Origin: Anaeramoeba ignava BMAN
Taxonomy: Eukaryota; Protista; Anaeramoebae
Assembly: GCA_028826165.1 (NCBI GenBank)
Contig: JAPDFW010000066.1
Span: 434,001 to 498,000, forward strand
Direction: 5' to 3'
Length of the DNA: 64,000 nt
The notes under the pieces are model-generated. The model was not told the DNA's origin and searched no databases. It worked only from the letters and a program-made list of their open reading frames with translations. Shown in pieces: positions 4,781-63,073 of this stretch; position 1 is the first letter of the stretch, and each line of letters starts with the position of its first letter. Made by a program: the position numbers and the translations under genes.

Positions 4781-7507
4781 TCACCAATCTCCATCATTTC
4801 CTTGAGATTTAGATTCCAATTCAGAAATAAATTCCGACAACTCTTGATTTTTGGATTGAGCAGCAATCTCTCTAGCCTTTTCAAACCTGCCTAATCTAGC
4901 AAAGTATCTACCTCTCAAATAAAGATCAGAAATTTTGTCAACAAATTGTTCAGCTTCTTGGGGGGCAAAATTTTGGACACAAACTTGAACAAACGGTTCA
5001 TAACCGATTGGGGATTTTTTTTTTGAGAATTCTAAGAGTAAGGAGAAATGACGGGCTCTTGCAAGTGCTCTGATGACAATCCACCAGAACTTCTTCTGGG
5101 GAACTACGAACTTCTTGTATAATTTCTCAGCTTCTTTCAGGTCTTTATTTGTGACAACCTTGTCGATTGTTTGTGTAATTGTGAGCCCGATAAATTGCCC
5201 CCGATAATCACTTTCGTATTTTTTTTGCAGTTGAAGAATATCAATGTTGTCTTGAACCATTTTTGTCATAAAAGAGTCGTGGGATTGTTGGAAAGAAAGC
5301 GCGGCAATGCGCAAAGTTTGGAGTTTTTTCTGGAAAAAAGTCTCGTTTGTTGAGTAGTTGAACTCACTTGGATCGTTTTGATCTTCGATGAATCCGTTGA
5401 GATCAAGTGAGTTCTTTTTGATATCTTCTCTTGGGTCGTTTTTTGAATCGAGAAGATTGTTTGAGATTTGGGTAGAAAGATCGGAAGTGTGACGCGGACG
5501 TGTTTTCATGTTTCCGATTGCGAGAGAGTTGTCAATATTTTCGGGGTTTTCTGCAGAATTTTCGTTCTGCGCAGAAATGCGACATTCTTGGATCAGGAAA
5601 TGTTTTGAGGATTCAAGAACACAAAGAAGAGAAGCTTCATGATCAAGTCTTGAGATTTGATAAAGTATCTTGAGCTTGTCGTGGAAAGCATATGAGGATT
5701 TCCAGTATGCGACAAGAAGATTTCTTGAAAGAGGGAATTTTGAGATGTACATCAACGACTCGTTAATGGGTCTTCTGGAATCAATAAGATGGAAAATGAC
5801 GAGATAGATGAAGTCTGTTTGTCCCGATTGGATTGCTTTTTGGAGCGCAAAATCGATGTTATTCATCCTGAGAAATAACGGCACTTGATGGGCGACCTTG
5901 AACTCGTAATTAAGGAGTTCCATGGCCAAACTCTCCTTCCCTTCGCTAAGTGCTACCGCTGCAATTCGCGAGTATGAAATGGATGATTCCATCCCGATTT
6001 TGTCGAGAATTGCTTGGAGAATTTTGTCCTTTTGCTCATTGGTGCGGATCTTTTCCGCGGCCCAACGCAGAAGAACCTGATCGGTATTCATTTTGAGGGA
6101 TTTGCATATCGAGAATGCGAGGAGATGTTGATTGTGGTCCAGAAGCCGCTCGATCAGGCCTTCGATGCCGAGCAGCTTGTATTGGGGATATGTGATTGGG
6201 ATGCCGATTGTATAAGTGCGGATGTTGTTAAGAACTCGGATGATTTTGCACTTGTCGGCATAGCTGTCATGATCAAAGAAATCCAAGTAGCTTTTTGCAA
6301 AGCAAGCTGTGCGGAGAAGTTTCCGCTGGAGATCAGGTCTGAACTCATGGGCGGCGGCTTTTATACACATTTTGATCGCTTCAGAAAGCTTTCCCCGTTG
6401 AGAAATGGAACGGATAATTTCGTCCACTTTTGCAGACTTTGTCTCAAAGTTTTGGATCGCGTCAAAAAGAATAGACGCATCAGAAGCTGAACCGATTTTA
6501 AATATATCCGTCAAAGGACTGGGAACGACTGAGATGAAATCACATTTGGTTGCGGATACAACTCTTGCGCCATCAGGTTCTGGAACAAGATAAATTTTCC
6601 CGTCATAATCAAATTGCACAGACTCACCTGTAGGACCAATCATTAACAAAAGATCCACATTTTGCCAATAAGACAAAATTGAGTCTGAAGAGCACCAAAG
6701 CATCTGGGTCGGTGCCCGTGTCGCGTGGGACTGAAAATCCAGATAAAAATTCCCTAAATCACTTGTGTAAACCACAAACCTCCCCTTGTTACTCACAAGA
6801 CACACCATCTTTCCATTGCTGGAAAGCGCCATCTTCACTACATGCTCTCTCTCTGTCATCCCTACATCCCTTTCCTCATACCCGTTGCTGTCGATAACGG
6901 CAATATTCCCGTCACTTAATCCGAGCCAAACTTCGACATTTCTCGAATTTGCGAATTTTGCCTCGATCCCCATCCGGCATTTCGGTCCCTGTCGAATTTT
7001 TGGCATCTTATACTCGTTAAAAAGTGGTGTTGTCAACTCACCGAACTCATTGGTTGCAAATAAACGGAATGTTTTTGTCATTGCTATCAGTCCGTTACTG
7101 AGCAAATCCACAAACAATATTCCCTCTTCCATAAACGCTTTTGGAAGATTGAAGGTCCAAACATGCTTTCCTAGCACGCTATAAAAATCCACCGCACCAT
7201 CCTCTGTCGCGATTGCCAGTCGCCCGTTATCTGTCCATCCCATACTCAAGATACGCGATTTTTCCATCCAATCAATCTGTCCGATTAGTTTTCCGGCACT
7301 TGTGTAGATAAATACTTTTGACTTTAGCATTGACGTTTGTGCTTTTACAAACTGTGTTTCATCTCGTGCTAATGCCAATGCCCCGCCATATTGTCCCCCG
7401 CTTAATATGTAATCTTCTAGTTTTACATCCCAATCAAGTTTGTATAGTTCTTGTTGTCGATAAAAGTGATTAGAAAGAATTGTCCATTCTGTTGATATTA
7501 GTGACAT
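4781..7507 (-). CDS. VPS16: Vacuolar protein sorting 16 (HOPS/CORVET subunit), intronless
   Basis: 908-aa ORF with Vps16 motifs: W..L...FYR..ELY.L.W, YGGALAL.RD, E.DG.RV, IFKIGS, CI.AA.HEF....Q.KLL..A.F.KS, RVLN.IR...IGIPIT..QY, SPIGYEPFV..C. Confidence 0.95.
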   Translation of the reverse strand: MSLISTEWTILSNHFYRQQELYKLDWDVKLEDYILSGGQYGGALALARDETQFVKAQTSMLKSKVFIYTSAGKLIGQIDWMEKSRILSMGWTDNGRLAIATEDGAVDFYSVLGKHVWTFNLPKAFMEEGILFVDLLSNGLIAMTKTFRLFATNEFGELTTPLFNEYKMPKIRQGPKCRMGIEAKFANSRNVEVWLGLSDGNIAVIDSNGYEERDVGMTEREHVVKMALSSNGKMVCLVSNKGRFVVYTSDLGNFYLDFQSHATRAPTQMLWCSSDSILSYWQNVDLLLMIGPTGESVQFDYDGKIYLVPEPDGARVVSATKCDFISVVPSPLTDIFKIGSASDASILFDAIQNFETKSAKVDEIIRSISQRGKLSEAIKMCIKAAAHEFRPDLQRKLLRTACFAKSYLDFFDHDSYADKCKIIRVLNNIRTYTIGIPITYPQYKLLGIEGLIERLLDHNQHLLAFSICKSLKMNTDQVLLRWAAEKIRTNEQKDKILQAILDKIGMESSISYSRIAAVALSEGKESLAMELLNYEFKVAHQVPLFLRMNNIDFALQKAIQSGQTDFIYLVIFHLIDSRRPINESLMYISKFPLSRNLLVAYWKSSYAFHDKLKILYQISRLDHEASLLCVLESSKHFLIQECRISAQNENSAENPENIDNSLAIGNMKTRPRHTSDLSTQISNNLLDSKNDPREDIKKNSLDLNGFIEDQNDPSEFNYSTNETFFQKKLQTLRIAALSFQQSHDSFMTKMVQDNIDILQLQKKYESDYRGQFIGLTITQTIDKVVTNKDLKEAEKLYKKFVVPQKKFWWIVIRALARARHFSLLLEFSKKKSPIGYEPFVQVCVQNFAPQEAEQFVDKISDLYLRGRYFARLGRFEKAREIAAQSKNQELSEFISELESKSQGNDGDW

Positions 7508-10063: not shown

Positions 10064-12284
10064 ATGTCACATTCTACACACAGTCATGAAAAATCGAACT
10101 CTAGAAGTTCAACTCATAGTTCACGGTAAGTAAATATAAAATAAAATACAAAATGGAAAAAAAAATTTTTATAAAAAAAAATAATTTATATAAAAAAAAA
10201 TAATATAAAAAAAGGTATATTGTGTTTCAATTGCTTTATTTTTATTCTTTTTTCATTCTATTAATGAACATTTGTTGTTAATATCAATTATTATTTGCTT
10301 CTTTGAGATCAATTCAAATCAGATTTTTGTTTATTTTATTCATTTTTCAATGTGTTTTAATGTTCAAATTTTTCTGATTTTTTGTCTATTTTTAATGTTG
10401 TTGATTCAAAAAAATAATAATTGATCCTTGGAAAAAAAAAGTTCACGTTCCCATTCTCGTTCGTATTCAAAAACTAGAAGTTATTCTGATTCAAGAACAC
10501 GAAGTTCTAGAAGGTAATTTTAATTTTTAATTTTAATTTTTAAATCAATTTTAATTTTTAAATCAATTTTAATTTTTAAATCAATTTTAATTTTAATTAT
10601 AATTTTAATTTGAATTTTAATTTTAATTATAATTTTAATTTTAATTTTAATTATAATTTTAATTTTAATTTTAATTTTAATTTTAATTTTAATTTTAATT
10701 TTAATTTTAATTATAATTTTTAATTTTAATTTTAATTTTAATTTTAATTTTAATTTTAATTTTAATTTTAATTTTAATTTTAATTTTAATTTTAATTTTA
10801 ATTTTAATTTTAATTTTAATTTTAATTTTAATTTTAATTTTAATTTTAATTTTAATTTTAATTTTAATTTTAATTTTAATTTTAATTTTAATTTTAATTT
10901 TAATTTTAATTTTAATTTTAATTTTAATTTTATTTTTATTTTTATTTTTAATTTTAATTTTAATTTTAATTTTTAAATCAATTTTTAGCTCTCCAAGATC
11001 ACATAGAAAATCAAATGAGCAAAAAAAAAAGGATCCAGAGCAAAAACCTAGAATGTTACATGTTAGAAATTTAACTCGAAATGTTACTGTTACTCATTTA
11101 GAGGAAATTTTTGGAAAATATGGTGTTATTGAAGTTTGTTATTCTTTTTTTCTTTTCAAAATTCAAAACCAAATTCAAAATCAAATTCAAAATTCAAATT
11201 AATTTAAATCAAAATTCAAAATCAAAATTCAAAATCAAAATCAAAATCAAATCAAAATCAAAATTCAAAATTAAATTAATACGATTCTAGAACGTAAATT
11301 TTATTCAACACCCAGTAACACAAGTTCCATTGGGTGTTGCTTATTTAACATTTAAAACATATGAAGAAGCATTAGAAGCAAAAATTCATATGGATCAAGC
11401 TCAATTAGATGGAAATTTTTTAATTATTTCATTTTTTGATGAAAATGATAAAGATAAAATAACATCAAAAAAAAAACGTTCAGATTCTAGATCTCCATCT
11501 CCATCATACAGAAGGTTTTCTCTCAAAATTAAAATTAAATTCAAATTTAAATTAAAATTCAAATTAAATTCAAATTAAATTCAAATTCAATTCAAATTAA
11601 ATTCAAATTAAATTTAAATTTAAATCCAAATTCAATTCAATTCAATTCAAATTTAAATTCAATTCAAATTAAAATTCAAATTCAAATTAAAATTCAAATT
11701 CAAATTAAAATTCAAATTAAAAATTCAATTCAAATTAAAATTCAAAATTCAATTCAAAATTCAAATTCAAATTAAATTTAATTCAATTCAAATTCAATTC
11801 AAATTCAATTCAAATTCAATTCAAATTCAATTCAAAATTCAAATTCAATTCAAAATTCAATTCAACCAAATTAAAATTAAATTCAAAATTTAAATTCAAT
11901 TCAAAATTTAATTCAAATTAAAAAAATGAAAAGATATAATTCAAATTATAGATATTCAGGAAGTCGTAAAAGACCTGCTAAAAGTGATACTTGGTCAATA
12001 AATGATAGAGAACGTTCTCCAAGAAGAAGAACCTATCATAGAAGAAATCATTCTCGTTCAAATTCTCGTTCATATTCACGTTCTCCTTCGTAATTAAATT
12101 TTAATTATAAATTTTTAATTTCAAATTATAAATTTAATTTTAATTTTAATTTTTAATTTTTAATTTCAGTTATTCTCGCAATTCTTATTCAAAATCTCGT
12201 TCAGTTTCAAACTCAAAATCTTATTCTAAATCTTATTCTAGATCTCCTTCAAAATCAGTTTCAAAATCACCAATTCGCAAATAA
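10064..12284 (+). CDS. RNPS1: RNPS1/SR45-like RRM protein with flanking Ser/Arg-rich regions (multi-exon)
   Basis: Spliced exons (10064-10125, 10442-10513, 10989-11133, 11291-about 11514 and two more) give RS-rich ends and the RRM MLHVRNLTRNVTVTHLEEIFGKYG...GVAYLTF...EALEAKIHMDQAQLDG. This matches the RNPS1 signature LTRNV..HI.EIF..YG / HMDGGQIDG. Confidence 0.85.
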
Positions 12285-12491: not shown

Positions 12492-15400
12492 ATGACTGAA
12501 AAGACCATTTTCCATGATTTAATGCCAAATAGTCCTACAGCAAATCTTTCAATTCCATGGTTAAATGTAAAAAAAAATTCAAAAAGCAAAATTTTAATTT
12601 AATTTATTTCATTCGATTAAAATGGTTGATTTACAATTGTTTATTTCATTTTAATTTAATTCAATTTATTCAATTCAATTCAATTCAATTTATTTATTTC
12701 GATTCAATTCAATTCAATTCAATTTATTCAATTCAATTCAATTCAATTTATTTAATTTATTTAATTTAATTCAATTCAATTCAATTTATTTAATTCAATT
12801 TATTTCTATTTATTTCAATTCAATTCAATTTATTTATTTCAATTCAATTCAATTCAATTTAATTTAATTTATTCAATTTATTTAATTCAATTTATTTCAA
12901 TTTAAAATAGGATACTGGAAATATTCAAGAAGTTACAACTTCCGATTCAGAAAAAAAACCAGATATAGAAGAAAACGAAGAAGATCAAAACAAAGAACAA
13001 GATGAAATAAATGAAAATGATTTTATTGATATGAAAATAATTTTAAAACAATGCAAAAGAAGAGTTGAAAAAAAAGTTTTATTGAATGAATTAAAAGGAT
13101 ATCTTGTTTTCTTAATTGTTTTTATGATGTTTTTATCTGCTTTAAGAGATGTTACTCTTTCTTGGGAAAGTAATTTTGGAATGACTGATCTTTTTCTTGA
13201 TGAAGAGTTTCCTCCTTCAGATACAGAAATTAAAAAAACATTTTGGGATGTTGGATCTTATGTTTGTTATTTTTTATTCTTTTTTATTCTTTTTTATTCT
13301 TTTTTATTCTTTTTTATTCTTTTTTACTAATTTTTCTTTTTATTTTTCATTTTTATTTCATTTTTATGATATAGAAGAAAAGAATTATAAAAAGTAATTA
13401 TAATTAAAATTAAAATTAAAATTAAAATTAAAATTAAAATTAAAATTAAAATTAAAATTAAAATTAAAATTAAAATTAAAATTAAAATTAAAATTAAAAT
13501 TAAAATTAAAATTAAAATTAAAATTAAATTAAAATTAAAATTATAATTAAAATTAAAATTAAAATTAAAATTAAAATTTTAATTAAAATTAAAATTAAAA
13601 TTAAAATTATAATTAAAATTAAAATTAAAATTTAATCTTAATGTTTAAAAATTAAAATTTTTATTTTTATTCTTTTTATTCTTTTTATTCTTTTTGATAG
13701 TTTTGGAATTTTTCGTTTTTATTTCAGTTTAATTTCAAGTTGGAGCAATTCGTTTTCGTTTATTAAGAGTAACATCAGGTTCTTGTAAAATCCCATCACA
13801 ATATGAAGATTTCGCAGGAAAAACATGTTATCGAGAATATAAAAATTCAAGAAAGGCAACTGAACCATTTGGTCCATCAAATATGTAACTCAAAAATTAA
13901 AATTAAAATTAATATTTAAAATATTTTTAATATTTATAAAATTAAATATTATTAAATTTAATATTTTTATATTTATATTATTTTTAATATTTAAAATTTA
14001 TATTGAAATTAATATTTTAATATTTATTAATATTTATTAAATTTTTAAAATTTATTTGGTATTTTTTAATATTTATTGATAGTATTTTTAATATTTTTTT
14101 TTATAATATTTATAATATTTTTAATATTTTTAATATTTTTTTATTTATTAAATATTTATTAATATTTTTGTAAAATCCCATAATATTTATGAAGATTTTT
14201 TAAGGAAAAACATATTTATCGAGAATATAAAATATTCAAGAAAGGCAACTGAACCATTTAATAATCAAATATGTATTTTAATATTTATATTAATATTTAT
14301 TCAATATTTTAATATTTTCAATATTTATTAATATTTATTTAATATTTAATAATATTTATTAATTTTAATATTTATAATATTTATTAATATTTTAATATTT
14401 TCAATATTTATTAATATTTATAATATTTTCAATATTTATTAATATTTTAATATTTAAATATTTTCAATATTTATTAATATTTTAATATTTAAATATTTTC
14501 AATATTTATTAATATTTTAATATTTAAATATTTTCAATATTTATTAATATTTTAATATTTAAATATTTTTAATATTTATCAATATTTATTAATATTTTTA
14601 ATATTTTCAAAGTTGGCAATATTCTTCAGCGTCAACATTAAAAACCACTTCCGAATTAGGAAGATCAGGAAGAAGTTATGAAGGAGGAGGATATGCAGTT
14701 GATTTTCCGAAAGGAACAAACAACACAGCCGCGATTGACTATCTTCAGAATAACGATTTCCTTGACAAATCAAGTCGAGCTTTATTTGTTCACATTCATC
14801 TTTACAATATAAACTCAAATCAATTTATGGCTTTGGTTCCCTTATTCGAGATTACTGCAGGTGGTTTAGTCATTCCAAGTGTTTCAATTCGTGCTTTCCG
14901 TCTTGATTTATATCCTTTTTATTATCATTTTTATTATCATTTTTATTATCATTTTTATTATCATTTTTATTATCATTTTTATTTATTTAAAAAAATTATT
15001 TACAATTTTTAATTGATTTTCTTTGACTCAAACTTACATATTTGACTGCAATTGATTATTATAGGGGAGTTCTTGAAGTTATTATAGTTCTTTTTGTTAT
15101 TTATTATACTATTTCAACAGTTAGAGATGTAAATTAAATTAAATTATTTTTTTTAAAATTAAATTAAATTAAATTATATTTATTTAAAAAAAAATTTTCC
15201 TCAATTTTTTTAATTTTTAGGTTGTCAAAACTTATTTTAACAGAGGAAATCCTCTTTTATATTTCTTTAATATTTGGAATCTCGTTGATTTTGTGAATTT
15301 AGTTGTAATTTTACTTCAAAATGATTTGAATTAAATTTAAAATTAAATTTAAAAAAAAATATTTTCATTTTCAAAAAAAAAAAAAAGTTATTTTGGGCGT

Positions 15401-18288
15401 TAATTATCATGCATATTTCCTATCTTGTTGAAGTTAACAAAACAAATGCAGATTTGGATAGCAACGATTTTGTTCCACTTTCAATTTTGGCGAAGAAATA
15501 TATGATGTTTATGTCGGTGATTTCCTTTAATGTTTTTTTGACTTGGTTCAAAATTTTTAAATTCCTTCGATTAAACAAAAGAATGCTACTACTTTGGGAC
15601 ACACTTTCAGATGTAAATGAATGTGGTTGATTTCTTTTTAGTTTTCATTGCATTGATTTCCTATTTGGATTTTTTTTGTTTTTTGTTAGGCTGCTCCTGA
15701 TATTACAATTTTTCTTACTTTCTTTCTTATTGTTTTTATTGCTTTTGCAACAATGGGTTTTGTTTTATTTGGGCCTGTTATTGATACATTTAGAGATTTT
15801 TCACAATCTATTATTACTTGTTTTCAGATGGCACTTGGTGATTTAAGTTTAGATGATCTTCGATTAGGAAATCGATTTTTAGGACCTATTGTATTTATTA
15901 ATTATTTTTAATTCAAAATAATTTACAAAATAATTTTAATTCAAAATAATTTACAAAATAATTTAATTCAAAATAAATTTAATTCAAAATAATTTTAATT
16001 CAAAATAAATTTAATTCAAAATAAATTTAATTCAAAATAATTTAATTCAAAATAATTTAATTCAAAATAATTTATTTCAAAATAATTTATTTAAAAATAA
16101 TTTAATTCAAAATAATTTATTTCAAAATAATTTATTTCAAAATAATTTATTTCAAAATAATTTATTTCAAAATAATTTACAAAATAATTTAATTCAAAAT
16201 AAATTTAATTCAAAATAAATTTAATTATAAATAATTTTAATTCAAAATAATTTACAAAATAAATTATTTCAAAATAATTTTAATTCAAAATAAATTTATT
16301 TCAAAATAATTTATTTCAAAATAATTTTAATTCAAAATAAATTTATTTCAAAAATAAATTTAATTCAAAATAATTTTATTTCAAAATAATTTTAATTCAA
16401 AATAAATTTAATTCAAAATAATTTAATTCAAAATAATTTTAATTCAATATAATTTACAAAATAATTTTCAAAATAAATTCAATTCAAAATAATTTACAAA
16501 ATAATTTTATTTCAAAATATTTCAAAAATAATTAAAATTAAAATTAAATTTAAATCAAAATTAAATCAAAATTTAATTCAAAATTTTTATTAATTTCAAA
16601 ATAATTTTTTAATTCAAAATAAATTTAATTCAAAAATAATTTAATTCAAAATATTTTAATTCAAAAATAATTTTAATTCAAAATAAATTTAATTCAAAAT
16701 AAATTTAATTTGAAGAAAAAGTTGATACAAAATAATTTAATTCAAAATAAATTTAATTCAAAATAATTTAATTCAAAATAAATTTAATACAAAATAATTT
16801 AATTATAAATATTTTAATTCAAAATAATTTATTTTTCTTTTTAATTTAAAAATAAATTTAAATTCTGAATTTAAAAATATGTTTTTTTAAAATTATTAAT
16901 CGTAAAATGAATGTTAAAAAAAAAAAAAAGCTATTAAAAATCTTTTAAAAGAAATTTTCGAAACAAATTTAAATTAAATTCAAAAATAAATTTAAAAATA
17001 AATTTAATTTTGAAATTTAAAAATGAATTTTAAAAAATTCAAAAACTTAAAGGTTTTTAAAAATAATGTTTAAAAATGTTGTCCTTCGAAAAAAAAATAA
17101 ATTTTAAAAGTTCAATTTGAAAAAAAATTTAAATGAATTTAAAGCATTAAAAAAAATGAATTTAAAAATGAATTTAAAAATAAAAATTTAAAAATGAATT
17201 TAAAAACAAATTTAAAAATGAATTTAAAAATGAATTTAAAAATAAATTTAAAAATAAATTTAAAAATGAATTTAAAAATAAATTTAAAAATAAATTTAAA
17301 AATAAATTTAAAAATAAATTTAAAATAAATTTAAAAATAAATTTAAAAATAAATTTAAAAATAAATTTAAAAATGAATTTAAAAATAAATTTAAAAATAA
17401 ATTTAAAAATAAATTTAAAAATGAATTTAAAAATAAATTTAAAAATGAATTTAAAAATGAATTTAAAAATGAATTTAAAAATGAATTTAAAAATGAATTT
17501 AAAAATGAATTTATAAATGAATTTATAAATAAATTTATAAATGAATTTATAAATGAATTTAAAAACAAATTTAAAAATGAATTTAAAAATGAATTTAAAA
17601 ATAAATTTAAAAATGAATTTAAAAATAAAAAAATTTAAAAATAAATTTAAAAATGAATTCGCTAAAATTTTGCATATTAAATCAAAAACACAAAAAAAGA
17701 AAAAAGAAGAGAGTTTAGAAGATGTTTCAGAAGTAATTATTCTTAATTTTAATTTCAATTTCAATTTCAATTTCAATTTTAATTTCAATTTTAATTTAAT
17801 TTCAATTTTAATTTCAATTTTAATTTTGATTTTAATTTTAATTTCAATTTTAATTTCAATTTTAATTTTAATTTCAATTTCAATTTTAATTTTGATTTTA
17901 ATTTTGATTTTAATTTCAATTTTAATTTTGATTTTAATTTTAATTTCAATTTTAATTTTGATTTTAATTTTGATTTTAATTTCAATTTTAATTTTAATTT
18001 TAATTTCAATTTTAATTTTGATTTTAAATTTTAATTTTAATTTTAATTTTAATTTCAATTTTAATTTCAATTTTAATTTCAATTTTAATTTTAATTTCAA
18101 TTTCAATTTCAATTTCAAAACAGGTATTGAAATCTGAATATGAATCACTACAACAATCTTTAGGAAAATTGGAAGAAAGGGTTAATCAATTAACAAGTGA
18201 TAACAATAATGATAACAATAACAATAATAATGATAACAATAACAATAACAATAACAATAATGATAACAATAATGATAACAATAATTGA
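12492..18288 (+). CDS. PKD2: Polycystin-2 (TRPP/PKD2-like) cation channel, multi-exon; S6 exon and one TOP-domain exon are corrupted in this assembly
   Basis: TOP domain: GAIRFRLLRVTSGSC.IP, EPFG, YEGGGY, LD..SRA.FV....YN.N, FE..AGG.VIPS. S4: FLTWFKIFKFL.LNK.M. Pore: FA..G..LFG..ID.F..F.QSIITCFQMALGD...LRLGNRFLGPI. C-terminal coiled coil and poly-Asn end at TGA 18286-18288. Confidence 0.9.
14910..15037 (+). other. AT-AC intron with U12-type (minor spliceosome) signatures, 128 nt
   Basis: 5' end ATATCCTTTT; branch-like TTTTCTTTGAC at 15017-15027; 3' end ...CTTAC. Removal restores RLDL-YLTAIDYYRGVLEVII, collinear with PKD2 KLIRYVTTFDFF...EII. Confidence 0.85.
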
Positions 18289-42723: not shown

Positions 42724-45700
42724 ATGGAAATTGAAGAAAGAAATCAAGTTTATAAAAGACAATTTATTGAATTTTTAAGAATTGAAGTAAAAATCAAATT
42801 AAATTAAAAAATCAAATTAAAAATCAAATTAAAAATTTAAATTAATTTAGAATAATGATAAAAGAATTGATCAAATGATTGATCAAAAAATGCAAAGAAC
42901 AATTATTAATGCAAATGATTTAAGAAATTTTGATCCAAAATTATGTTCCGAGTTTGTTTTATTTTTTTATAAATTCAAAATTTTTAAAATTCATTTTAAA
43001 TTCCTTTTAGATTTATAAATCATCCAGCTGATTATTTACAAGCTTTTAATGATGCATTAACTGAAATTGTTAATGATAAATTTCCCAATTATGCAAACAC
43101 TTTTGATTATGAAAATTTTTTTATTGGAATAGAAGGAAATCTTGGAGAAATACATCACACAAGTCCGCGCCAACTCAAATCATCGCTTCTCGGGAAACTT
43201 GTTTGTATAAATGGAATAGTGAATAAATGTAATTTTGAAAGAAAAAAAACAAAATCGAAATTGTTCGACTTTTATTTAAGTTAAATGGAATTTTTTTGTT
43301 TACAAGGTTCTATTGTGAGACCGAAGGTTGTTCAAAGCGTTCACTATTGTAAAGTGACTACCAAGACGATGGCGAGAGTGTACCGCGATGAGACCTCAAT
43401 CGATGGACTTCCCACTGGGTTTATGTATCCGACTACTGATGATGAGGGAAATGCGCTTGTGACAGAATATGGGCTCAGCAAATATAAAGATTACCAACGG
43501 TTGACAATTCAAGAAACCCCAGAAACTTTGCCTACAGGTCAGCTACCGAGATCTATTGAGATTATTTTGGAAAACGATCTTGTTGATTCTGTCAAACCTG
43601 GTGATCGAGCCAAAATTTATGGTATTTTTCGTGCACTTGCTGGAAAGGCGACAGGTCTTGTTTCGGATGTTTTTCCGACAGTTGTGCTCGCTAATAATGT
43701 GAGTAAGGATGACAAAGGCACGCTTCCTAAGCAGCTGACTGACCAAGATGTTTCTTCTATCAGAGAATTTTCAAAAAGAAAAGACTTGTTTGAAGTCTTA
43801 ACAAATTCCATTGCTCCGTCAATTTATGGCCATGAAATGCTAAAGAAGAGTCTTCTTCTTATGCTTCTTGGAGGGGTTGAGCGAGTCTTGGCTAATAAAG
43901 CGCACTTGAGAGGGGATATAAACATATTGATGATTGGAGACCCTTCAACAGCAAAATGTTTTTTGAAAAACACTCCAATTGTTCGTTTTGACGGCACGAT
44001 TTGCAGTGTTCAAGATGTCTCTGCAGGCGATGTTTTGATGGGCGATGATCTGCAAAAACGCGTTGTGCAAGTCACTACTTCTGGTCACTCAATGATGTAC
44101 CGTGTTGTCCCTAAATTGGGCGATTCTTTTATTGTTAATGGAGATCATTTGTTATCAATTAAAGTGGAAAAAAGTGGAACAAAAAATAACGGACTAAATG
44201 GAGATTTTTATTCAAAAAATTCTTTTTTTCAAACTGAGATTTCTGTTGATTCTTTTCTTAGGCTTCCTCGATATTTGCAACAAAAATGCAGATTGTTTCG
44301 GAAATCAGTTGAATATCCTGAAAAAATTGTTGATTTTGATCCTTTTTTGATTGGATTTTGGATTGGAAATTGCAGTTTGGATTCCTTTGTGTCTTTCAAG
44401 GATTTTTGTTCAAAATTTGTTGGGAAATCAGTTGGTTGTTTATCAGAAGAAAAGCTTTTGGATCTTGATTTGGAAATGGAAGAAAAAAGACATATTCCTG
44501 AAAAATATTTAATCAATAATAGCAAAATTAGGGAACGTTTACTTCTTGGGCTTTTTTCTTCAAGAATTGGATCAATTCAAGAAGAAGATTCAATTGGATT
44601 GTTTTCTTTTGTTATTCCGAATTTGGAAAGAAATCAAAAATTAGTTTCAGATATTTTGTATCTTTCCCGTTCACTTGGATTTTGTTGTGAAAAAGTTGAT
44701 TTCAAAGAAAGAATAGAAGTTATTGTTTATGGATCAAAACAAGAAGAAAGCAAAAAAATGATTGAAAAGGGAGAATTTATTAACTTAGCAAAAGCAAATG
44801 AAGATTTTTTGATGACAAGTTTTGAGGTTGAAAAATATGGATATGATGATTATTATGGGTTTTCAGTTGATGGGAATCATAGATTTTTATTGGGTGATTT
44901 TACAGTTGCTCATAATTCTCAGTTGTGTCGGTTTATTTTGAATATTGCGCCTTTAGCGATTAGCACTACAGGAAGAGGGTCTACTGGAGTTGGTAACTTT
45001 TCATATAAATTTATATTTAAAATTTTGATTTATATTTGATTTATATTTGATTTGATTTAAATTTGATTTAAATTTTGATTTAATATTTTATTTAAATTTT
45101 GATTTAATATTTGATTTAATATTTGATTTTAATATTTGATTTTAATATTTGATTTAAATTTTGATTTAATATTTGATTTATATTTGATTTTATTTTTATA
45201 TTTAATTTAATATTTGATTTAATATTTAATTTTATATTTGATTTATATTAATTTAATATTTGATTTATATTTGATTTATATTTGATTTAATATTGATTTA
45301 TATTTGATTTAATATTTGATTTAAAATTTGATTTATATTTAAAATTTTATTTTATATTTGATTTATATTTGATTTATTTTGATTTAAATTTATTTTAATA
45401 TTTGATTTAATATTTGATTTAAAATTTGATTTATATTTGATTTATATTTGATTTATATTTAATTTAAAATTGATTTAAAATTTGATTTAAATTTTGATTT
45501 AATATTATATTTAATATTTTATATTTGATTTGATGTAAAGGTTTAACGGCGGCAGTTACAACCGATCCAGAAACCCGAGAAAAAAGATTAGAAGCAGGAG
45601 CAATGGTATTAGCAGATCGAGGAATTGTTATAATTGATGAATTTGACAAAATGTCATTTTTGGATCGAATCGCAATTCACGAAGCAATGGAACAACAAAC

Positions 45701-46883
45701 AGTAACAATTTCAAAAGCAGGAATACACACAAGTCTTAACGCAAGATGCTCTGTAATTGCAGCAGCAAATCCAATTTATGGACAGTATGATCGAACTAAA
45801 AAACCATCAGAAAATATTGCACTTCCTGATTCGTTACTTTCCCGTTTTGATCTCCTTTTTATTGTTCTTGATAATATTGATCCTGAATCAGATCGCCTCA
45901 TTTCTAATCATGTCCTTAAAATGCATATGTGGCAAAATGATGTCGCAAATGACCCTAATTTTTCAAATACTCAAGATGAAAAAGATGATCAAGATTTTGA
46001 CATTTTTTTAAATAGAAATCCTTTTGAAGAAATGACTAAAAAATGGCAGAAAAAAAAAAGCCAGAAAAATAAAAGGTATCAAACAAGGAAAAGTTCGCAA
46101 AGAAACAGCAAATCGGAAAGCAAAAGCCAAAATGATGATGATGAGAATTTTGAACAAAAAAAAATTCTTAATATTGATTTTTTGAAAAAATACATTTACT
46201 TTGCTAAACAAAAGATTGTTCCAAAAATGACCAATGAAGCATCCGAATTTATTGCATCATTTTGGGTTGGCTTAAGAAGTAAGGAAGGAATAAAAACACA
46301 GCCCATTACAGCAAGAACTTTGGAAACACTTATTCGTTTATCAACTGCTCATGCAAAAGCAAGACTCAGTGATATCGTGACTGAAGAAGATGCAAAAGGA
46401 GCAAGTGATATTATTAATTTTGCATTGTTTCATGAAGCTGAACCAAAGAAGGCTGAAGTTAAAAGAAAGAAACGACGAGAACCTGTTCAAATTGAAAATG
46501 AAAATGAAAATGAAATCAAAATCAAAATTGAAAATGAAAATGAAAATGAAAATGAAAATGAAAATGAAAATCAAAATCAAAATGAAATTCAAATCGAAAA
46601 TGAAAATAATTCAAATGCGATTGAAATGGATCAAGAAATTGATTCGCAAACAAAACCTAATTTATCTAAAACAAAAGATCGTTTAGTTGAATTTAGAAAA
46701 TTAATTGCAAATGTTTTCAAGAAAAAACGAACAAATGAAATGCAAATTGAAATTTTAATTCAAGAAATTAATGAAACAAAACCAAATCCATTATATGATT
46801 TTGAAGAAATTGAACCATATTTACATCAACTTCAAGAAGAGAATAGGTTAATGTTTAGTGAAGGAGTTGTGTTTTTAATTTAA
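42724..46883 (+). CDS. MCM3: DNA replication licensing factor MCM3 (5 exons, intein-containing)
   Basis: [116 protein letters not shown]. Last intron is 44993-45540. Confidence 0.97.
43957..44916 (+). mobile_element. Intein (320 aa) with degenerate LAGLIDADG homing endonuclease, in the MCM3 Walker A motif
   Basis: In-frame insert between GDPSTAK and SQL. Block A CFLKNTPI, block [10 protein letters not shown], blocks [25 protein letters not shown], +1 Ser. Endonuclease remnants: [37 protein letters not shown]. Confidence 0.96.
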
Positions 46884-55684: not shown

Positions 55685-58600
55685 TTAAAAATCGGATTTA
55701 ATTGATTCATCTAAATCATCGGAATCATTTAGTAAATCGTCATCTGTATTATTTAATAATTCTTCAATTAATTCCTTTTCATCATTTCTTTTTCGTTTTC
55801 TTTTTTGTAACAAAACAATAACCACAATCAAAGAAATTATAAAAACAGGAACAATAACGCTGATTGTAATGATAACTGTTTTTGAATTTGAAGTTGAAGG
55901 TTCGTTTTGAGTCCAAATCAAAGTTTCTGCAGGATTTCCACATTGATAATGCATATCACATGCTGAAACATTGATATAATACTCTTCATTTGCAAGATTT
56001 GCTGTTATTTTTTCATTTGTTGATGTTAAATTAATTGAATTCAAATCTTGATTATTTTGTGATTGATAAGTGAAATTATAAAAGGAAGGAGAAAGTGTTC
56101 CATTTGGTTTATCCCATGAACATATAATTTCATAAATATCTGCTACTGAACAACTTAAATTATTAACTGGCCCAAATATTAATGTATCAATTGTTGTATT
56201 TGAAATATCTCCACATATACCATTTATATCACAAGCTGAAACATTAATATAATATTCTTCATTTGAATGATTCGCTGTTATTGTTTCATTTGTTATTGCT
56301 AAATTAAACGAACCATTATCTTCTCCATTTTGTGATTGATAACTGAAATTATAAAAGGAAGGAATAAGTGTTCCATTTGGTTCATCCCATGAGCAACTAA
56401 TTGTAAATGAATCTGATATTGAACAACTTAAATTATTAACTTTTTCAAATATTAATGTATTAATTGTTATATTTGAAATATCTCCACATATACCATTTAT
56501 ATCACAAGCTGAAACATTAATATAATATTCTTCATTTGAATAATTTGCTGTTATTGTTTCATTTGTTATTGCTAAATTAAACGAACCATTATCTTCTCCA
56601 TTTTGTGATTGATAACTGAAATTATAAAAGGAAGGAATAAGTGTTCCATTTGGTTTATCCCATAAACAAATAATTGTAAATGAATCTGATATTGAACAAC
56701 TTAAATTATTAACTTTTTCAAATATTAATGTATTAATTGTTATATTTGAAATATCTCCACATATACCATTTATATCACAAGCTGAAACATAGATATAATA
56801 TTCTTCATTTGAATAATTTGCTGTTATTGTTTCATTTGTTATTGCTAAATTAAATGAACCAATATCTTCTCCATTTTGTGATTGATAAGTGAAATTATAA
56901 AATGAAGGAATAAGTGTTCCATTTGGTTCATCCCATGAGCAACTAATTGTAAATGAATCTGATATTGAACAACTTAAATTATTAACTTTTTCAAATATTG
57001 TTGTAGTAATCATCTTTGTTGAAACATCTCCACATATACCATTTATATCACAGGCTGAAACATAGATATAATATTCTTCATTTGAATAATTTGCTGTTAT
57101 TGTTTCATTTGTTATTGCTAAATTAAATGAACCAATATCTTCTCCATTTTGTGATTGATAACTGAAATTATAAAAGGAAGGAATAAGTGTTCCATTTGGT
57201 TTATCCCATAAACATATAATTGTAAATGAATCTGATATTGAACAATTTAAATGATTAACTTTTTCAAATATTGTTGTATTAATTGTTATATTTGAAACAT
57301 TTCCACATATACCATTTATATCACAAGCTGAAACATAGATATAATATTCTTCATTTGAATAAATTGCTGTTGTATTCCCATTTGGTAAAGTAAAATTAAA
57401 TGAACCAATATCTTCTCCATTTTGTGATTGATAAGTGAAATTATAAAAGGAAGGAGAAAGTGTTCCATTTGGTTTATCCCATGAACAAATAATTGTAAAT
57501 GAATCTGATATTGAACAATTTAAATGATTAACTTGTTCAAATATTGTTGTATTAACTACTACATTTGAAACATCCCCACATTTATTGTTTATATCACAAG
57601 CTGAAACATAGATATAATATTCTTCATTTGAATAATTTGCTGTTATTGTTTCATTTGTTATTGTTGATATTAAATTAAACGAACCATTATCTTCTCCATT
57701 TTGTGATTGATAAGTGAAATTATAAAATGAAGGAATAAGTGTTCCATTTGGTTTATCCCATAAACATATAATTGTAAATGAATCTGATATTGAACAACTT
57801 AAATTAACTTGTCCAAATATTGATGTAGTAATTATTATGTTTGAAACATCTCCACATTTATTGTTTATATCACAAGCTGAAACATTAATTTGATATTCTT
57901 CATTTGAATAATTTGCTGTTATTGTTTCATTTGTTATTGTTGATATTAAATTAAACGAACCATTATCTTCTCCATTTTGTGATTGATAACTGAAATTATA
58001 AAAGGAAGGAGAAAGTGTTCCATTTGGTTTATTCCATGAACAACTAATTGTAAATGAATCAGATATTGAGCAACTTAAATTATTAACTTTTTCAAATATT
58101 GTTGTATTAATCATCTTTGTTGAAATATCCCCACATATACCATTTATATCACAGGCTGAAACATAGATATAATATTCTTCATTTGAATAATTTGCTGTTA
58201 TTGTTTCATTTGTTATTGTTGATGCTAAAATAAATACACCATTATCTTCTCCATTTTGTGATTGATAAGTAAAATTATAAAAGGAAGGAGAAAGTGTTCC
58301 ATCTGGTTCATCCCATGAACATATAATTGTAAATGAATCTGATATTGAACAATTTAAATTATTAACTGGTCCAAATATCGATGTAGTAGCTGTCGTTGTT
58401 GAAATATCTCCACATATACCATTTATATCACATGCTGAAACATTAATTTGATATTCTTCATTTGAGTAATTTGCTGTTATTGTTTCACTTGTTGATGTTA
58501 AATTAAACGAACCATTATCTTCTCCATTTTGTGATTGATAAGTGAAATTATAAAAGGAAGGAATAAGTGTTCCATTTGGTTTATCCCATGAACATATAAT

Positions 58601-61600
58601 TGTAAATGAATCTGATATTGGACAATTTAAATGATTAACTTTTTCAAATATTGTTGTAGTAATTGTTGTATTTGAAATATTTCCACATATACCATTTATA
58701 TCACAAGCTGAAACATAGATATAATATTCTTCATTTGAATAATTTGCTGTTGTATTCCCATTTGGTAAAGTAAAATTAAGTGAACCATTATCTTCTCCAT
58801 TTTGTGATTGATAAGTAAAATTATAAAATGAAGGAATAAGTGTTCCATTTGGTTTATCCCATAAACAAATAATTGTAAATGAATCTGATATTGAACAATT
58901 TAAATTATTAACTTTTTCAAATATTGTTGTAGTAATTGTTGTATTTGAAACATTTCCACATATACCATTTATATCACAAGCTGAAACATAGATATAATAT
59001 TCTTCATTTGAATAATTTGCTGTTGTATTCCCATTTGTTAAAGTAAAATTAAGTGAACCATTATCTTCTCCATTTTGTGATTGATAACTGAAATTATAAA
59101 ATGAAGGAATAAGTGTTCCATTTGGTTCATCCCATGAACATATAATTGTAAATGAATCTGATATTGAACAATTTAAATTATTAACTTGTTCAAATATTGT
59201 TGTAGTAACTGTTGTATTTGAAACATTTCCACATATACCATTTATATCACAAGCTGAAACATAGATATAATATTCTTCATTTGAATAAATTGCTGTTGTA
59301 TTCCCATTTGGTAAAGTAAAATTAAGTGAACCATTATCTTCTCCATTTTGTGATTGATAAGTAAAATTATAAAATGAAGGAATAAGTGTTCCATTTGGTT
59401 TATCCCATGAACATATAATTGTAAATGAATCTGATATTGAACAATTTAAATTATTAACTTTTTCAAATATTGTTGTAGTAACTATCTTTGTTGAAATATC
59501 TCCACAATGGTTGTTTATATCACAAGCTGAAACATTAATTTGATATTCTTCATTTGAATAATTTGCTGTTATTGTTTCATTTGTTGATGTTAAATTAAAA
59601 GAACCATTATCTTCTCCATTTTGTGATTGATAACTGAAGCTATAAAATGAAGGAATAAGTGTTCCATCTGGTTTATCCCATGAGCAACTAATTGTAAATG
59701 AATCAGATATTGAACAACTTAAATTAACTGGTCCAAATATTGATGTAGTAACTATCTTTGTTGAAATATCTCCACATATACCATTTATATCACAGGCTGA
59801 AACATTAATTTGATATTCTTCATTTGAATAGTTTGCTGTTATTGTTTCATTTGTTGATGTTAAATTAAAAGAACCATTATCTTCTCCATTTTGTGATTGA
59901 TAACTGAAGCTATAAAATGAAGGAATAAGTGTTCCATTTGGTTTATCCCATGAACAACTAATTGTAAATGAATCAGATATTGAACAACTTAAATTAACTT
60001 GTTCAAATATTGTTGTAGTAACTGTTGTATTTGAAACATTTCCACATATACCATTTATATCACAAGCTGAAACATAGATATAATATTCTTCATTTGAATA
60101 GTTTGCTGTTATTGTTTCATTTGTTGATGTTAAATTAAAAGAACCATTATCTTCTCCATTTTGTGATTGATAACTGAAATTATAAAATGAAGGAATAAGT
60201 GTTCCATTTGGTTTATCCCATGAACAACTAATTGTAAATGAATCTGATATTGAACAATTTAAATTATTAACTTGTCCAAATATTGTTGTAGTAACTGTTG
60301 TATTTGAAACATTTCCACATATACCATTTATATCACAAGCTGAAACATAGATATAATATTCTTCATTTGAATAGTTTGCTGTTATTGTTTCATTTGTTAT
60401 TGTTAAATTAAACGAACCAATATCTTCTCCATTTTGTGATTGATAAGTGAAATTATAAAATGAAGGAATAAGTGTTCCATTTGGTTCATCCCATAAACAA
60501 ATAATTGTAAATGAATCTGATATTGAACAACTTAAATTAACTTCTCCAAATATTGTTGTAGTAACTGTTGTATTTGAAACATTTCCACATATACCATTTA
60601 TATCACAAGCTGAAACATAGATATAATATTCTTGATCTGAATAATTTGCTGTTATTGTTTCATTTGTTATTGTTAAATTAAGTGAACCAATATCTTCTCC
60701 ATTTTGTGATTGATAAGTGAAATTATAAAATGAAGGAATAAGTGTTCCATTTGGTTTATCCCATAAACAAATAATTGTAAATGAATCAGATATTGAACAA
60801 CTTAAATTAACTTCTCCAAATATTGTTGTATTAATTGTTGTATTTGAAACATTTCCACATATACCATTTATATCACAAGCTGAAACATAGATATAATATT
60901 CTTGATCTGAATAATTTGCTGTTATAGTTTCATTTGTTATTGTTAAATTAAATGAACCAATATCTTCTCCATTTTGTGATTGATAAGTGAAATTATAAAA
61001 TGAAGGAATAAGTGTTCCATTTGGTTCATTCCATGAACATATAATTGTAAATGAATCTGATATTGAACAATTTAAATTATTAACTTGTCCAAATATTGTT
61101 GTATTAACTATTTTATTTGAAATATCTCCACATATACCATTTATATCACAAGCTGAAACATATATATAATATTCTTGATCTGAATAATTTGCTGTTATTG
61201 TTTCATTTGTTATTGTTAAATTAAGTGAACCAATATCTTCTCCATTTTGTGATTGATAAGTAAAATTATAAGATGAAGGAGAAAGTGTTCCATTTGGTTC
61301 ATCCCATAAACAAATAATTGTAAATGAATCTGATATTGAACAACTTAAATTATTAACTTGTTCAAATATTAATGTATTAACTGTTGTATTTGAAATATCT
61401 CCACATATACCATTTATATCACAAGCTGAAACATAGATATAATATTCTTCATTTGAATAATTTGCTGTTATTGTTTCATTTGTTATTGTTAAATTAAGTG
61501 AACCAATATCTTCTCCATTTTGTGATTGATAAGTAAAATTATAAGATGAAGGAATAAGTGTTCCATTTGGTTCATCCCATAAACAAATAATTGTAAATGA

Positions 61601-63073
61601 ATCTGATATTGAACAATTTAAATTATTAACTTGTCCAAATATTAATGTATTAACTGTTGTATTTGAAACATCTCCACATATACCATTTATATCACAAGCT
61701 GAAACATAGATATAATATTCTTCATTTGAATAATTTGCTGTTATTGTTTCATTTGTTATTGTTAAATTAAGTGAACCAATATCTTCTCCATTTTGTGATT
61801 GATAACTGAAATTATAAAATGAAGGAGAAAGTGTTCCATTTGGTTCATCCCATGAGCAAATAATTGTAAATGAATCTGATATTGAACAACTTAAATTAAC
61901 TTGTCCAAATATTGTTGTATTTGAAATTGTGGAAACTTCTCCTTTAGAATCTCCTTGGCATTCAGATGTTTGACAAGCCCATATTGAAATTGAATAATTG
62001 CTCCCCGAATTTAAATTACTCAAGTTGTATGAAGTAGATGAATTGTTAATAGTAGCATCTCCCACTTCTTCTTCCATATTTAAAGAATAAGAAATAGCAT
62101 AATGATCAAGTTTTGGAACACCTTCAATGATTGGAACATTTGGATAATTCCATGAAATATCAATAGATGTTGATGATAATGTTATTGCTGATAAATTTTT
62201 TACTGAATCAATTCTAGTTGTTAAATTGACTTCATTTGTAGAATTCCCACATTGATCCTCTGCATCGCAAGCTATTATTTGAATTGTGTAATTTTCATTC
62301 CCAGAAATATTTGGATAATTCGAAGAATCAAAAATTTGATAAAGAGTATTGTCTTGTACTTCCGGATTTTGAATTATATTCCAATCTCCGTTATAATTGA
62401 TCTTATATGTGATATTGTCTTGAGAAACGTTATACCAATAACATTCAAAAGAAGAAAACAAAGTTGTACAGTTGATAATAGTAACATTATCTGGAGTTAC
62501 TTGTTCATGAAAGTTGAGGTAATTTTGAAGATTTGAAAATGGGATTTTGGATTCTATCCAATTTTTTCCGTTGAATTTAAACAAATAGACTGAATTTTGA
62601 TTTGAATTTAGATTTGAATTTTGATTTGAATTTTGATTTGAATTTAGATTTGAATTTTGATTTGAATTTTGATTTGAATTTATCCCCTTTGTTTGAACTA
62701 GCAAAATATCATCTTCTAAAATTGAACAACTTGAGCCAAAATAACCATTTGCAATTCCATCACTTGCAATAAGTGTTGCTTCTTTATTCCAATTTGATCC
62801 TTCCTTTCGATAAACATAAACTTTTCCTTGGTTTTTATTGTTTCCAATTGAAGCTTCAGGAAATCCTATAAGAATTAAATTTTTTGAAACACTAATTTCC
62901 TTGCCACATTTTTCTTGATAATTTTTTTGATTAAAATCTTTTGGAATGCATTCAATTTTGTGGAAATTTGTTTTTGCTTTCTGTTTTTCTGTGATTTGGT
63001 AAGTTTTGCTATTGAAAATTGTTATTGATAAAGAAAGGAAAATTAAAATAAAAAATAGTTTGTTTTGTTTCAT
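55685..63073 (-). CDS. Giant type-I membrane protein: signal peptide, partial FG-GAP-like head, 2 divergent + 22 near-identical FN3-like repeats, TM helix, short acidic tail; intronless
   Basis: 2462-aa ORF. Hydrophobic N-terminus; GKVYVY / LIASDG....YFGSS blades; 22 units of about 91 aa (C.ISDSFTI.C.WD.P...Y...VSACD..G.CG); TM VIITISVIVPVFIISLIVVIVLL followed by KRKRKR. Confidence 0.9.
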   Translation of the reverse strand: MKQNKLFFILIFLSLSITIFNSKTYQITEKQKAKTNFHKIECIPKDFNQKNYQEKCGKEISVSKNLILIGFPEASIGNNKNQGKVYVYRKEGSNWNKEATLIASDGIANGYFGSSCSILEDDILLVQTKGINSNQNSNQNSNLNSNQNSNQNSNLNSNQNSVYLFKFNGKNWIESKIPFSNLQNYLNFHEQVTPDNVTIINCTTLFSSFECYWYNVSQDNITYKINYNGDWNIIQNPEVQDNTLYQIFDSSNYPNISGNENYTIQIIACDAEDQCGNSTNEVNLTTRIDSVKNLSAITLSSTSIDISWNYPNVPIIEGVPKLDHYAISYSLNMEEEVGDATINNSSTSYNLSNLNSGSNYSISIWACQTSECQGDSKGEVSTISNTTIFGQVNLSCSISDSFTIICSWDEPNGTLSPSFYNFSYQSQNGEDIGSLNLTITNETITANYSNEEYYIYVSACDINGICGDVSNTTVNTLIFGQVNNLNCSISDSFTIICLWDEPNGTLIPSSYNFTYQSQNGEDIGSLNLTITNETITANYSNEEYYIYVSACDINGICGDISNTTVNTLIFEQVNNLSCSISDSFTIICLWDEPNGTLSPSSYNFTYQSQNGEDIGSLNLTITNETITANYSDQEYYIYVSACDINGICGDISNKIVNTTIFGQVNNLNCSISDSFTIICSWNEPNGTLIPSFYNFTYQSQNGEDIGSFNLTITNETITANYSDQEYYIYVSACDINGICGNVSNTTINTTIFGEVNLSCSISDSFTIICLWDKPNGTLIPSFYNFTYQSQNGEDIGSLNLTITNETITANYSDQEYYIYVSACDINGICGNVSNTTVTTTIFGEVNLSCSISDSFTIICLWDEPNGTLIPSFYNFTYQSQNGEDIGSFNLTITNETITANYSNEEYYIYVSACDINGICGNVSNTTVTTTIFGQVNNLNCSISDSFTISCSWDKPNGTLIPSFYNFSYQSQNGEDNGSFNLTSTNETITANYSNEEYYIYVSACDINGICGNVSNTTVTTTIFEQVNLSCSISDSFTISCSWDKPNGTLIPSFYSFSYQSQNGEDNGSFNLTSTNETITANYSNEEYQINVSACDINGICGDISTKIVTTSIFGPVNLSCSISDSFTISCSWDKPDGTLIPSFYSFSYQSQNGEDNGSFNLTSTNETITANYSNEEYQINVSACDINNHCGDISTKIVTTTIFEKVNNLNCSISDSFTIICSWDKPNGTLIPSFYNFTYQSQNGEDNGSLNFTLPNGNTTAIYSNEEYYIYVSACDINGICGNVSNTTVTTTIFEQVNNLNCSISDSFTIICSWDEPNGTLIPSFYNFSYQSQNGEDNGSLNFTLTNGNTTANYSNEEYYIYVSACDINGICGNVSNTTITTTIFEKVNNLNCSISDSFTIICLWDKPNGTLIPSFYNFTYQSQNGEDNGSLNFTLPNGNTTANYSNEEYYIYVSACDINGICGNISNTTITTTIFEKVNHLNCPISDSFTIICSWDKPNGTLIPSFYNFTYQSQNGEDNGSFNLTSTSETITANYSNEEYQINVSACDINGICGDISTTTATTSIFGPVNNLNCSISDSFTIICSWDEPDGTLSPSFYNFTYQSQNGEDNGVFILASTITNETITANYSNEEYYIYVSACDINGICGDISTKMINTTIFEKVNNLSCSISDSFTISCSWNKPNGTLSPSFYNFSYQSQNGEDNGSFNLISTITNETITANYSNEEYQINVSACDINNKCGDVSNIIITTSIFGQVNLSCSISDSFTIICLWDKPNGTLIPSFYNFTYQSQNGEDNGSFNLISTITNETITANYSNEEYYIYVSACDINNKCGDVSNVVVNTTIFEQVNHLNCSISDSFTIICSWDKPNGTLSPSFYNFTYQSQNGEDIGSFNFTLPNGNTTAIYSNEEYYIYVSACDINGICGNVSNITINTTIFEKVNHLNCSISDSFTIICLWDKPNGTLIPSFYNFSYQSQNGEDIGSFNLAITNETITANYSNEEYYIYVSACDINGICGDVSTKMITTTIFEKVNNLSCSISDSFTISCSWDEPNGTLIPSFYNFTYQSQNGEDIGSFNLAITNETITANYSNEEYYIYVSACDINGICGDISNITINTLIFEKVNNLSCSISDSFTIICLWDKPNGTLIPSFYNFSYQSQNGEDNGSFNLAITNETITANYSNEEYYINVSACDINGICGDISNITINTLIFEKVNNLSCSISDSFTISCSWDEPNGTLIPSFYNFSYQSQNGEDNGSFNLAITNETITANHSNEEYYINVSACDINGICGDISNTTIDTLIFGPVNNLSCSVADIYEIICSWDKPNGTLSPSFYNFTYQSQNNQDLNSINLTSTNEKITANLANEEYYINVSACDMHYQCGNPAETLIWTQNEPSTSNSKTVIITISVIVPVFIISLIVVIVLLQKRKRKRNDEKELIEELLNNTDDDLLNDSDDLDESIKSDF

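Follow-up and report, generated by a model that had tools for sequence, protein, structure and literature searches.

The AT-AC intron that interrupts a polycystin-2-like (TRPP) channel gene of Anaeramoeba ignava BMAN is, by every sequence feature testable here, a U12-type intron of the A-subclass, and we consider it very likely that a minor spliceosome, retained in A. ignava since the last eukaryotic common ancestor, excises it. It lies at 14910–15037 of the window, the whole stretch of 64,000 nucleotides that was analysed. That A. ignava has a minor spliceosome has already been inferred in print, in 2024 and from the same genome; what we add, of modest value, are candidates for the machinery, a branch motif and an intron in PGAP3 that the annotation missed.

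U12-type introns are recognized by an RTATCCTT donor, by a branch sequence close to TTCCTTRAY whose branch A lies about 10–20 nt from the 3′ end with no polypyrimidine tract, and by restoration of the reading frame on removal. The intron at 14910–15037 (Table 1) carries the donor exactly, as ATATCCTT, directly after CGT CTT GAT TT, the last letters of the upstream exon, which ends at 14909. Its branch sequence, TTCTTTGAC, departs from TTCCTTRAY by a single, wobble-compatible C-to-T change, the putative branch A falls within the usual distance of the end, and removal restores a conserved frame. The GC content of the intron is 11.7%, neither AG nor GT occurs anywhere within it, and the frame read through it unspliced meets TAA at 15010–15012. 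The eight-letter donor alone is not significant in so AT-rich a window (2 seen against 4.7 expected), and at background AT-rich AC or AG sites the branch motif occurs with a frequency of 0.15% when written as TYCYTTGAY and 2.7% as TTYYTTRAY. What argues for a U12-type intron is not the 8-mer alone but its exact placement where the exon ends, combined with the branch motif.

Table 1. Features of the TRPP host gene (window positions) and two further AT-AC introns of the A. ignava genome
Feature	Position	Strand	Remarks
Polycystin-2-like (TRPP) channel gene	12492..18288	+	Deposited protein: KAJ5075263.1 (561 aa)
Upstream exon, polycystin (TOP) domain of TRPP channel	14613..14909	+	PDB matches PKD2L1, PKD2
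U12-type AT-AC intron	14910..15037	+	128 nt, phase 2, splits Leu296 codon of KAJ5075263.1
U12-type 5′ splice site ATATCCTT	14910..14917	+	Exact RTATCCTT match at exon edge
Branch-point sequence TTCTTTGAC	15019..15027	+	Putative branch A, 15026
AC 3′ splice site	15036..15037	+	11 nt past branch A; without polypyrimidine tract
Downstream exon, TOP domain end and transmembrane helix S2	15038..15128	+	GT-AG intron next
POLE2 AT-AC U12-type intron	L022:4405-5335, G000:C1:790404	+	931 nt, phase 0
PGAP3/Per1 AT-AC U12-type intron	L024:4573-4818, G000:C1 near 834809	-	245 nt, phase 2

Searches of the A. ignava BMAN assembly (42,843,398 bases, 147 contigs) returned candidates for three minor-type snRNAs. 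The U6atac candidate (G000:C71:58882-58994; 29.9 bits, E 2.7e-4, full model, against an Rfam cut-off of 33) retains an intact AAGGAGA box, AAAGGAGAGA, and core motif, GGUUAGCA, including the AGC triad. The U11 candidate (G000:C1:50977-51083; 26 bits against a cut-off of 39) has an E value of 0.21 and is not significant alone; its unconstrained fold is a four-way cloverleaf junction whose 5′ end, AAAGGA, is single-stranded; loop 3, of ten bases, contains UAUCAA and is followed by the Sm-like AAUUUAUUU, and the core fold is better than those of 196 of 200 shuffles (z −2.9). With both this 5′ end and the U6atac candidate, donor positions +4 to +9 can make six base pairs, as computed on the donor of the POLE2 intron, the first 8 letters of which are the same as ATATCCTT. 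A U4atac candidate was located at C95:129927-130058 (35.2 bits against a cut-off of 53, E 0.0039, full model). All three fall under the Rfam gathering scores, which counts against our reading. A U12 snRNA was found neither with RF00007 (42 of 2212 candidates scored) nor with two hand-written patterns, guesses that drew in part on PMC6679479, whose 7 matches, against 47 for the control, included none that was credible. Weaker U6atac matches (L003–L005) are without the AAGGAGA-GGUUAGC core and were taken as chance; L003:1501-1614 and L004:1501-1616, on the minus strand and from contigs C53 and C69, are almost the same and represent a single repeated sequence.

Two protein families specific to the minor spliceosome were also matched above their Pfam cut-offs, namely SNRNP25 (U11/U12-25K; PF18036, 57.1 bits, E 6e-14) and CENATAC (PF14968, 37.7 bits, E 4e-8, over the N-terminal 71 positions). 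These are family matches and not reciprocal orthology, a further point against our reading. CENATAC has a known preference for AT-AN introns (PMC8280824), so its match fits an AT-AC-rich intron set. The zf-U11-48K (SNRNP48) and zf-SCNM1 models, of 25–27 positions, gave no match in six-frame DNA of this intron-rich genome; the searches that missed U12, 48K and SCNM1 are weak on DNA that is both AT-rich and intron-rich, and the misses are no proof of absence. Judged from sequence, membership of the machinery is supported for the U6atac, SNRNP25 and CENATAC candidates and probable for those of U11 and U4atac.

The sequence-only reading of this DNA had proposed a search for the minor snRNAs and proteins and a test of the pairing of U11 with the donor. 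A U6atac candidate emerged with the diagnostic motifs and donor complementarity, and a U11 candidate with six pairs at +4 to +9; these and the U4atac candidate all score below cut-off, and U12 did not surface, and on the protein side SNRNP25 passed its cut-off while the SNRNP48 zinc finger went unmatched. That reading had also held that a genome with neither minor snRNAs or proteins nor further RTATCCT introns would point to a U2-type AT-AC intron; this one holds candidates for both RNAs and proteins, as well as such introns in POLE2 and PGAP3.

A rival reading, in which the intron is U2-type, or is a former U12-type intron that the major spliceosome, or a hybrid one, took over once the minor one had partly decayed, has a precedent in Giardia, for which AT-AC splicing and hybrid snRNAs are reported (PMC6679479), and it would accommodate the U12 snRNA, 48K and SCNM1 that went undetected in the searches made. 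Giardia resembles A. ignava as a metamonad with AT-AC termini, and minor snRNAs or 65K were not found in diplomonads (PMC6679479). However, Giardia introns fit the U2-type consensus, whereas A. ignava has the U12 donor, alongside distinct candidates for minor-type snRNAs. We regard this alternative as improbable: the full RTATCCTT donor recurs in 27 annotated AT-AC introns according to the supplement of PMC11550330, the donor is complementary to the U6atac and U11 candidates, and these stand beside a U4atac candidate and two minor-specific proteins. As to the 'working U11/U12 system' of the sequence-only reading, minor-specific parts are detectable and other U12-type introns exist; the intron anatomy, the read-through in the deposited protein, the complementarity and the candidate genes are observed, and that the system works, with the candidate genes expressed and the minor rather than the major machinery excising the intron, we infer from what is established about the U12-dependent pathway.

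The system would most likely follow the standard U12-dependent pathway, like the minor spliceosome of animals and plants. Under removal by the minor spliceosome, the free 5′ end of U11 (AAAGGA) would pair with donor positions +4 to +9, and U12 would pair with the TTCYTTGAY branch, leaving the A bulged and forming G-U wobbles where the branch differs from TCCTTAAC. The U4atac/U6atac.U5 complex would then join, with CENATAC aiding A-type introns, and the AAGGAGA box of U6atac would displace U11 at the donor while the AGC triad makes the catalytic centre. Two transesterifications would close the lariat at A15026 and join the exons as TT and A, a Leu codon.

The borders of the intron are corroborated by the deposited annotation. 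Searched against the PDB, the upstream exon retrieves PKD2L1 (E 7e-11) and PKD2 (E 5e-9); the downstream exon alone (15038..15128) is too short to retrieve TRPP from it. A protein library search with the upstream exon recovered KAJ5075263.1, an A. ignava polycystin family member, which, mapped onto the window, reads RAFRLDLYLTAIDYYRGVLEV across the 14909/15038 junction, so the depositors' model excises the same 128 nt. This provides annotation-level support for the intron borders, and in an alignment nine homologues span the junction in KAJ5075263.1 without a gap. No GT or GC donor in frame with the AG at 15063–15064 occurs between 14760 and 15037; the mildest in-frame GT-AG alternative, from GTCTTG at 14900 to an AG ending at 15069, would lose 14 more residues. 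The same mRNA results from five junction registers (shift 0–4), and the U12 donor and AT-AC ends coincide at shift 0 only. An assembly artefact or wrong borders, with termini that are consensus errors or a real GT-AG intron that has other ends, might be suspected from the nanopore-based assembly and from this ambiguity over five registers, but is the least probable explanation of all, given that the assembly was Pilon-polished, that an error would have to make donor, branch and AC together, that the in-frame GT-AG alternatives all cost at least 14 conserved residues and that the deposited protein has the same junction.

The sequence-only reading had described an AT-AC intron with U12 signatures at this place, with a branch A 11 nt from the end (A at 15026, final base 15037), a stop on unspliced reading at 15012 (the last base of the TAA codon), no in-phase GT donor for the AG at 15063–15064 and splicing collinear with PKD2, all of which agrees with the letters, the deposited junction and the gap-free homologues. 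It had further described the other introns that it could resolve in the window as GT-AG; those of the host gene with clearly placed borders do all begin with GT.

Elsewhere in the genome, introns of the same donor and branch class were found in POLE2 and PGAP3 (Table 1), the 2 genuine introns among 22 donor 9-mer sites inspected across the initial 968 kb of contig C1. The exons flanking the POLE2 intron, searched apart against PDB 5VBN_A, meet precisely, the upstream one ending at residue 211 and the downstream one starting at 212. For the PGAP3 intron, an alternative in-frame AT end is possible 18 nt earlier; the deposited PGAP3 protein (177 aa) begins at an internal Met downstream, from which it follows that the annotation missed this AT-AC intron. 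The branch sequences are TTCTTTGAT in POLE2 and TTCCTTGAT in PGAP3, and the motif TTCYTTGAY is thus common to all three introns examined (TRPP, POLE2 and PGAP3), a small sample. The branch A lies 21 nt (POLE2) and 25 nt (PGAP3) from the AC, distances exceeding the 11 nt of the TRPP intron, and this counts against our reading. The POLE2 intron is packed with hexamer-like AT repeats.

Two introns in 2.3% of the genome scale to about 90 genome-wide, with a 95% interval of 11–320 that covers the published count. A massive expansion to ~1100 minor introns, suggested by the 1338 occurrences of the donor 9-mer against 212 in a reversed control, was rejected, because 2 of the 22 C1 sites are introns and most of the sites encode Lys-Gly-Tyr when read on the other strand, and this accounts for a sixfold excess relative to the control. 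At L008, on the minus strand, two copies of a coding stretch lie 664 nt apart (near 7145 and 7809), with identical flanks around the 9-mer GTATCCTTT, which is not an intron donor there.

The published count comes from the same genome. Supplementary Note 1 and Table S3B of PMC11550330 (2024) list 33 AT-AC introns among 32,108 in A. ignava BMAN; 32 BMAN introns have a U12 donor, 27 of them AT-AC and 5 GT-AG, and A. flamelloides has 8–10 GT-type introns with a U12 donor and no annotated AT-AC introns. The supplement concludes that the donors strongly suggest a minor spliceosome in the lineage; it uses the 5′ motif only and reports no conserved branch point. Genome, donor and inference are the same as ours; the differences are that TTCYTTGAY is present in the three introns analysed here, where the supplement reports a branch motif as absent, and that snRNA and protein candidates are located here, whereas none are identified in the corresponding text of the paper. 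The deposited model splices the intron at 14910–15037, which is therefore almost certainly among the 27 that the supplement counts. The main text of PMC11550330 never mentions U12, and a search of the full-text literature found nothing pairing Anaeramoeba with the minor spliceosome or U12.

The A. ignava system shares with animal and plant A-type introns the RTATCCTT donor, a branch near the 3′ end and the lack of a polypyrimidine tract, and its candidate genes share with the animal and plant minor spliceosome the U6atac AAGGAGA box, the U11 cloverleaf, SNRNP25 and CENATAC. It differs in that G replaces the first A of the branch, which often finishes in T, that the snRNA candidates have a very high AT content and stay under the Rfam cut-offs, and that AT-AC introns make up 27 of the 32 introns with a U12 donor listed in the supplement, in contrast to 24–26% in human; the position of the TRPP intron, too, is not seen in any PKD2 homologue checked. 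Blastocystis ST1 is likewise a protist with AT-AC-enriched minor introns (77%; PMC10639083), but Blastocystis has hundreds of very short ones, whereas those of A. ignava number in the tens (perhaps about 100), with lengths of 128–931 nt in the three measured.

At the TRPP site, no intron is present in A. flamelloides (P0002, P0007), Barthelona (P0008, intronless), Paratrimastix (P0097), a beetle (P0025) or an intronless metagenome homologue, and one of the two A. flamelloides polycystins shares three neighbouring GT-AG positions with the A. ignava gene. At the PGAP3 site, none is present in three fungi (Blakeslea, Benjaminiella and Neoconidiobolus). The homologues compared are few, with a bias towards genes that have few introns, so both loss elsewhere and gain in A. 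ignava are possible. POLE2 is a known minor-intron gene in mammals, which hints at inheritance, at the level of the gene. It is also conceivable, if rather unlikely, that A. ignava acquired AT-AC minor introns, by gain or conversion, at positions specific to its lineage, and that their number is several times the 27–33 annotated. The hints are the absence of the TRPP and PGAP3 positions in the homologues above and of annotated AT-AC introns in A. flamelloides, the 1 of 2 newly examined introns that the annotation missed, and the extrapolation to about 90.

The sequence-only reading had made the wider meaning conditional on the organism being a metamonad, which A. ignava BMAN is. A minor-spliceosome survey scores Metamonada as a complete loss (PMC9887622, supplement), and minor introns or snRNAs are reported as not found in Excavata (PMC11347168); the searched parts of both contain no mention of Anaeramoeba. 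A minor spliceosome retained in Anaeramoeba would contradict such surveys. As Anaeramoebae branch sister to Parabasalia (10.64898/2026.04.11.717937), minor splicing kept there would imply that the metamonad ancestor had it and that several losses occurred within the group, among them one in A. pumila, which is poor in introns, provided that all 22 of them are U2-type. The published idea lies buried in a supplement and, in the text concerned, draws on donors alone; snRNA and protein candidates would give it proper documentation. Within the genus one can also compare a species rich in AT-AC introns, one with GT-AG introns only and one that has almost no introns.

Several further observations concern the host gene and its neighbours. 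The PKD2 exon 13780–13895 has its 3′ part repeated in degenerate form at 14165–14282, in the next intron, with about 85% identity and with frameshifts; the repeat includes the GT donor of the exon, is absent from the deposited protein and is either a pseudo-exon that arose by duplication in place or an assembly duplicate left unpolished. Parts of the deposited PKD2 model (13262–13741 and 15890–18127) look wrong, with short blocks that have odd borders, and relative to the A. flamelloides orthologue the model is without about 25 residues before KRIIKIG and without a post-S6 stretch. Directly upstream of the PKD2 gene, 10064–12284 (+) encodes an RRM protein with RS-rich ends, RNPS1-like by eye. 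Further along the window, an MCM3 gene (43285–46883, +) contains, within the P-loop domain, a Hint intein of the Hom_end type; the gene also has an AT-rich intron near 45000–45540, and inteins in Anaeramoeba MCM proteins are already published (PMC10710043). An intronless open reading frame of 2462 aa at 55685–63073 (-) encodes many fibronectin type III repeats and an FG-GAP repeat.
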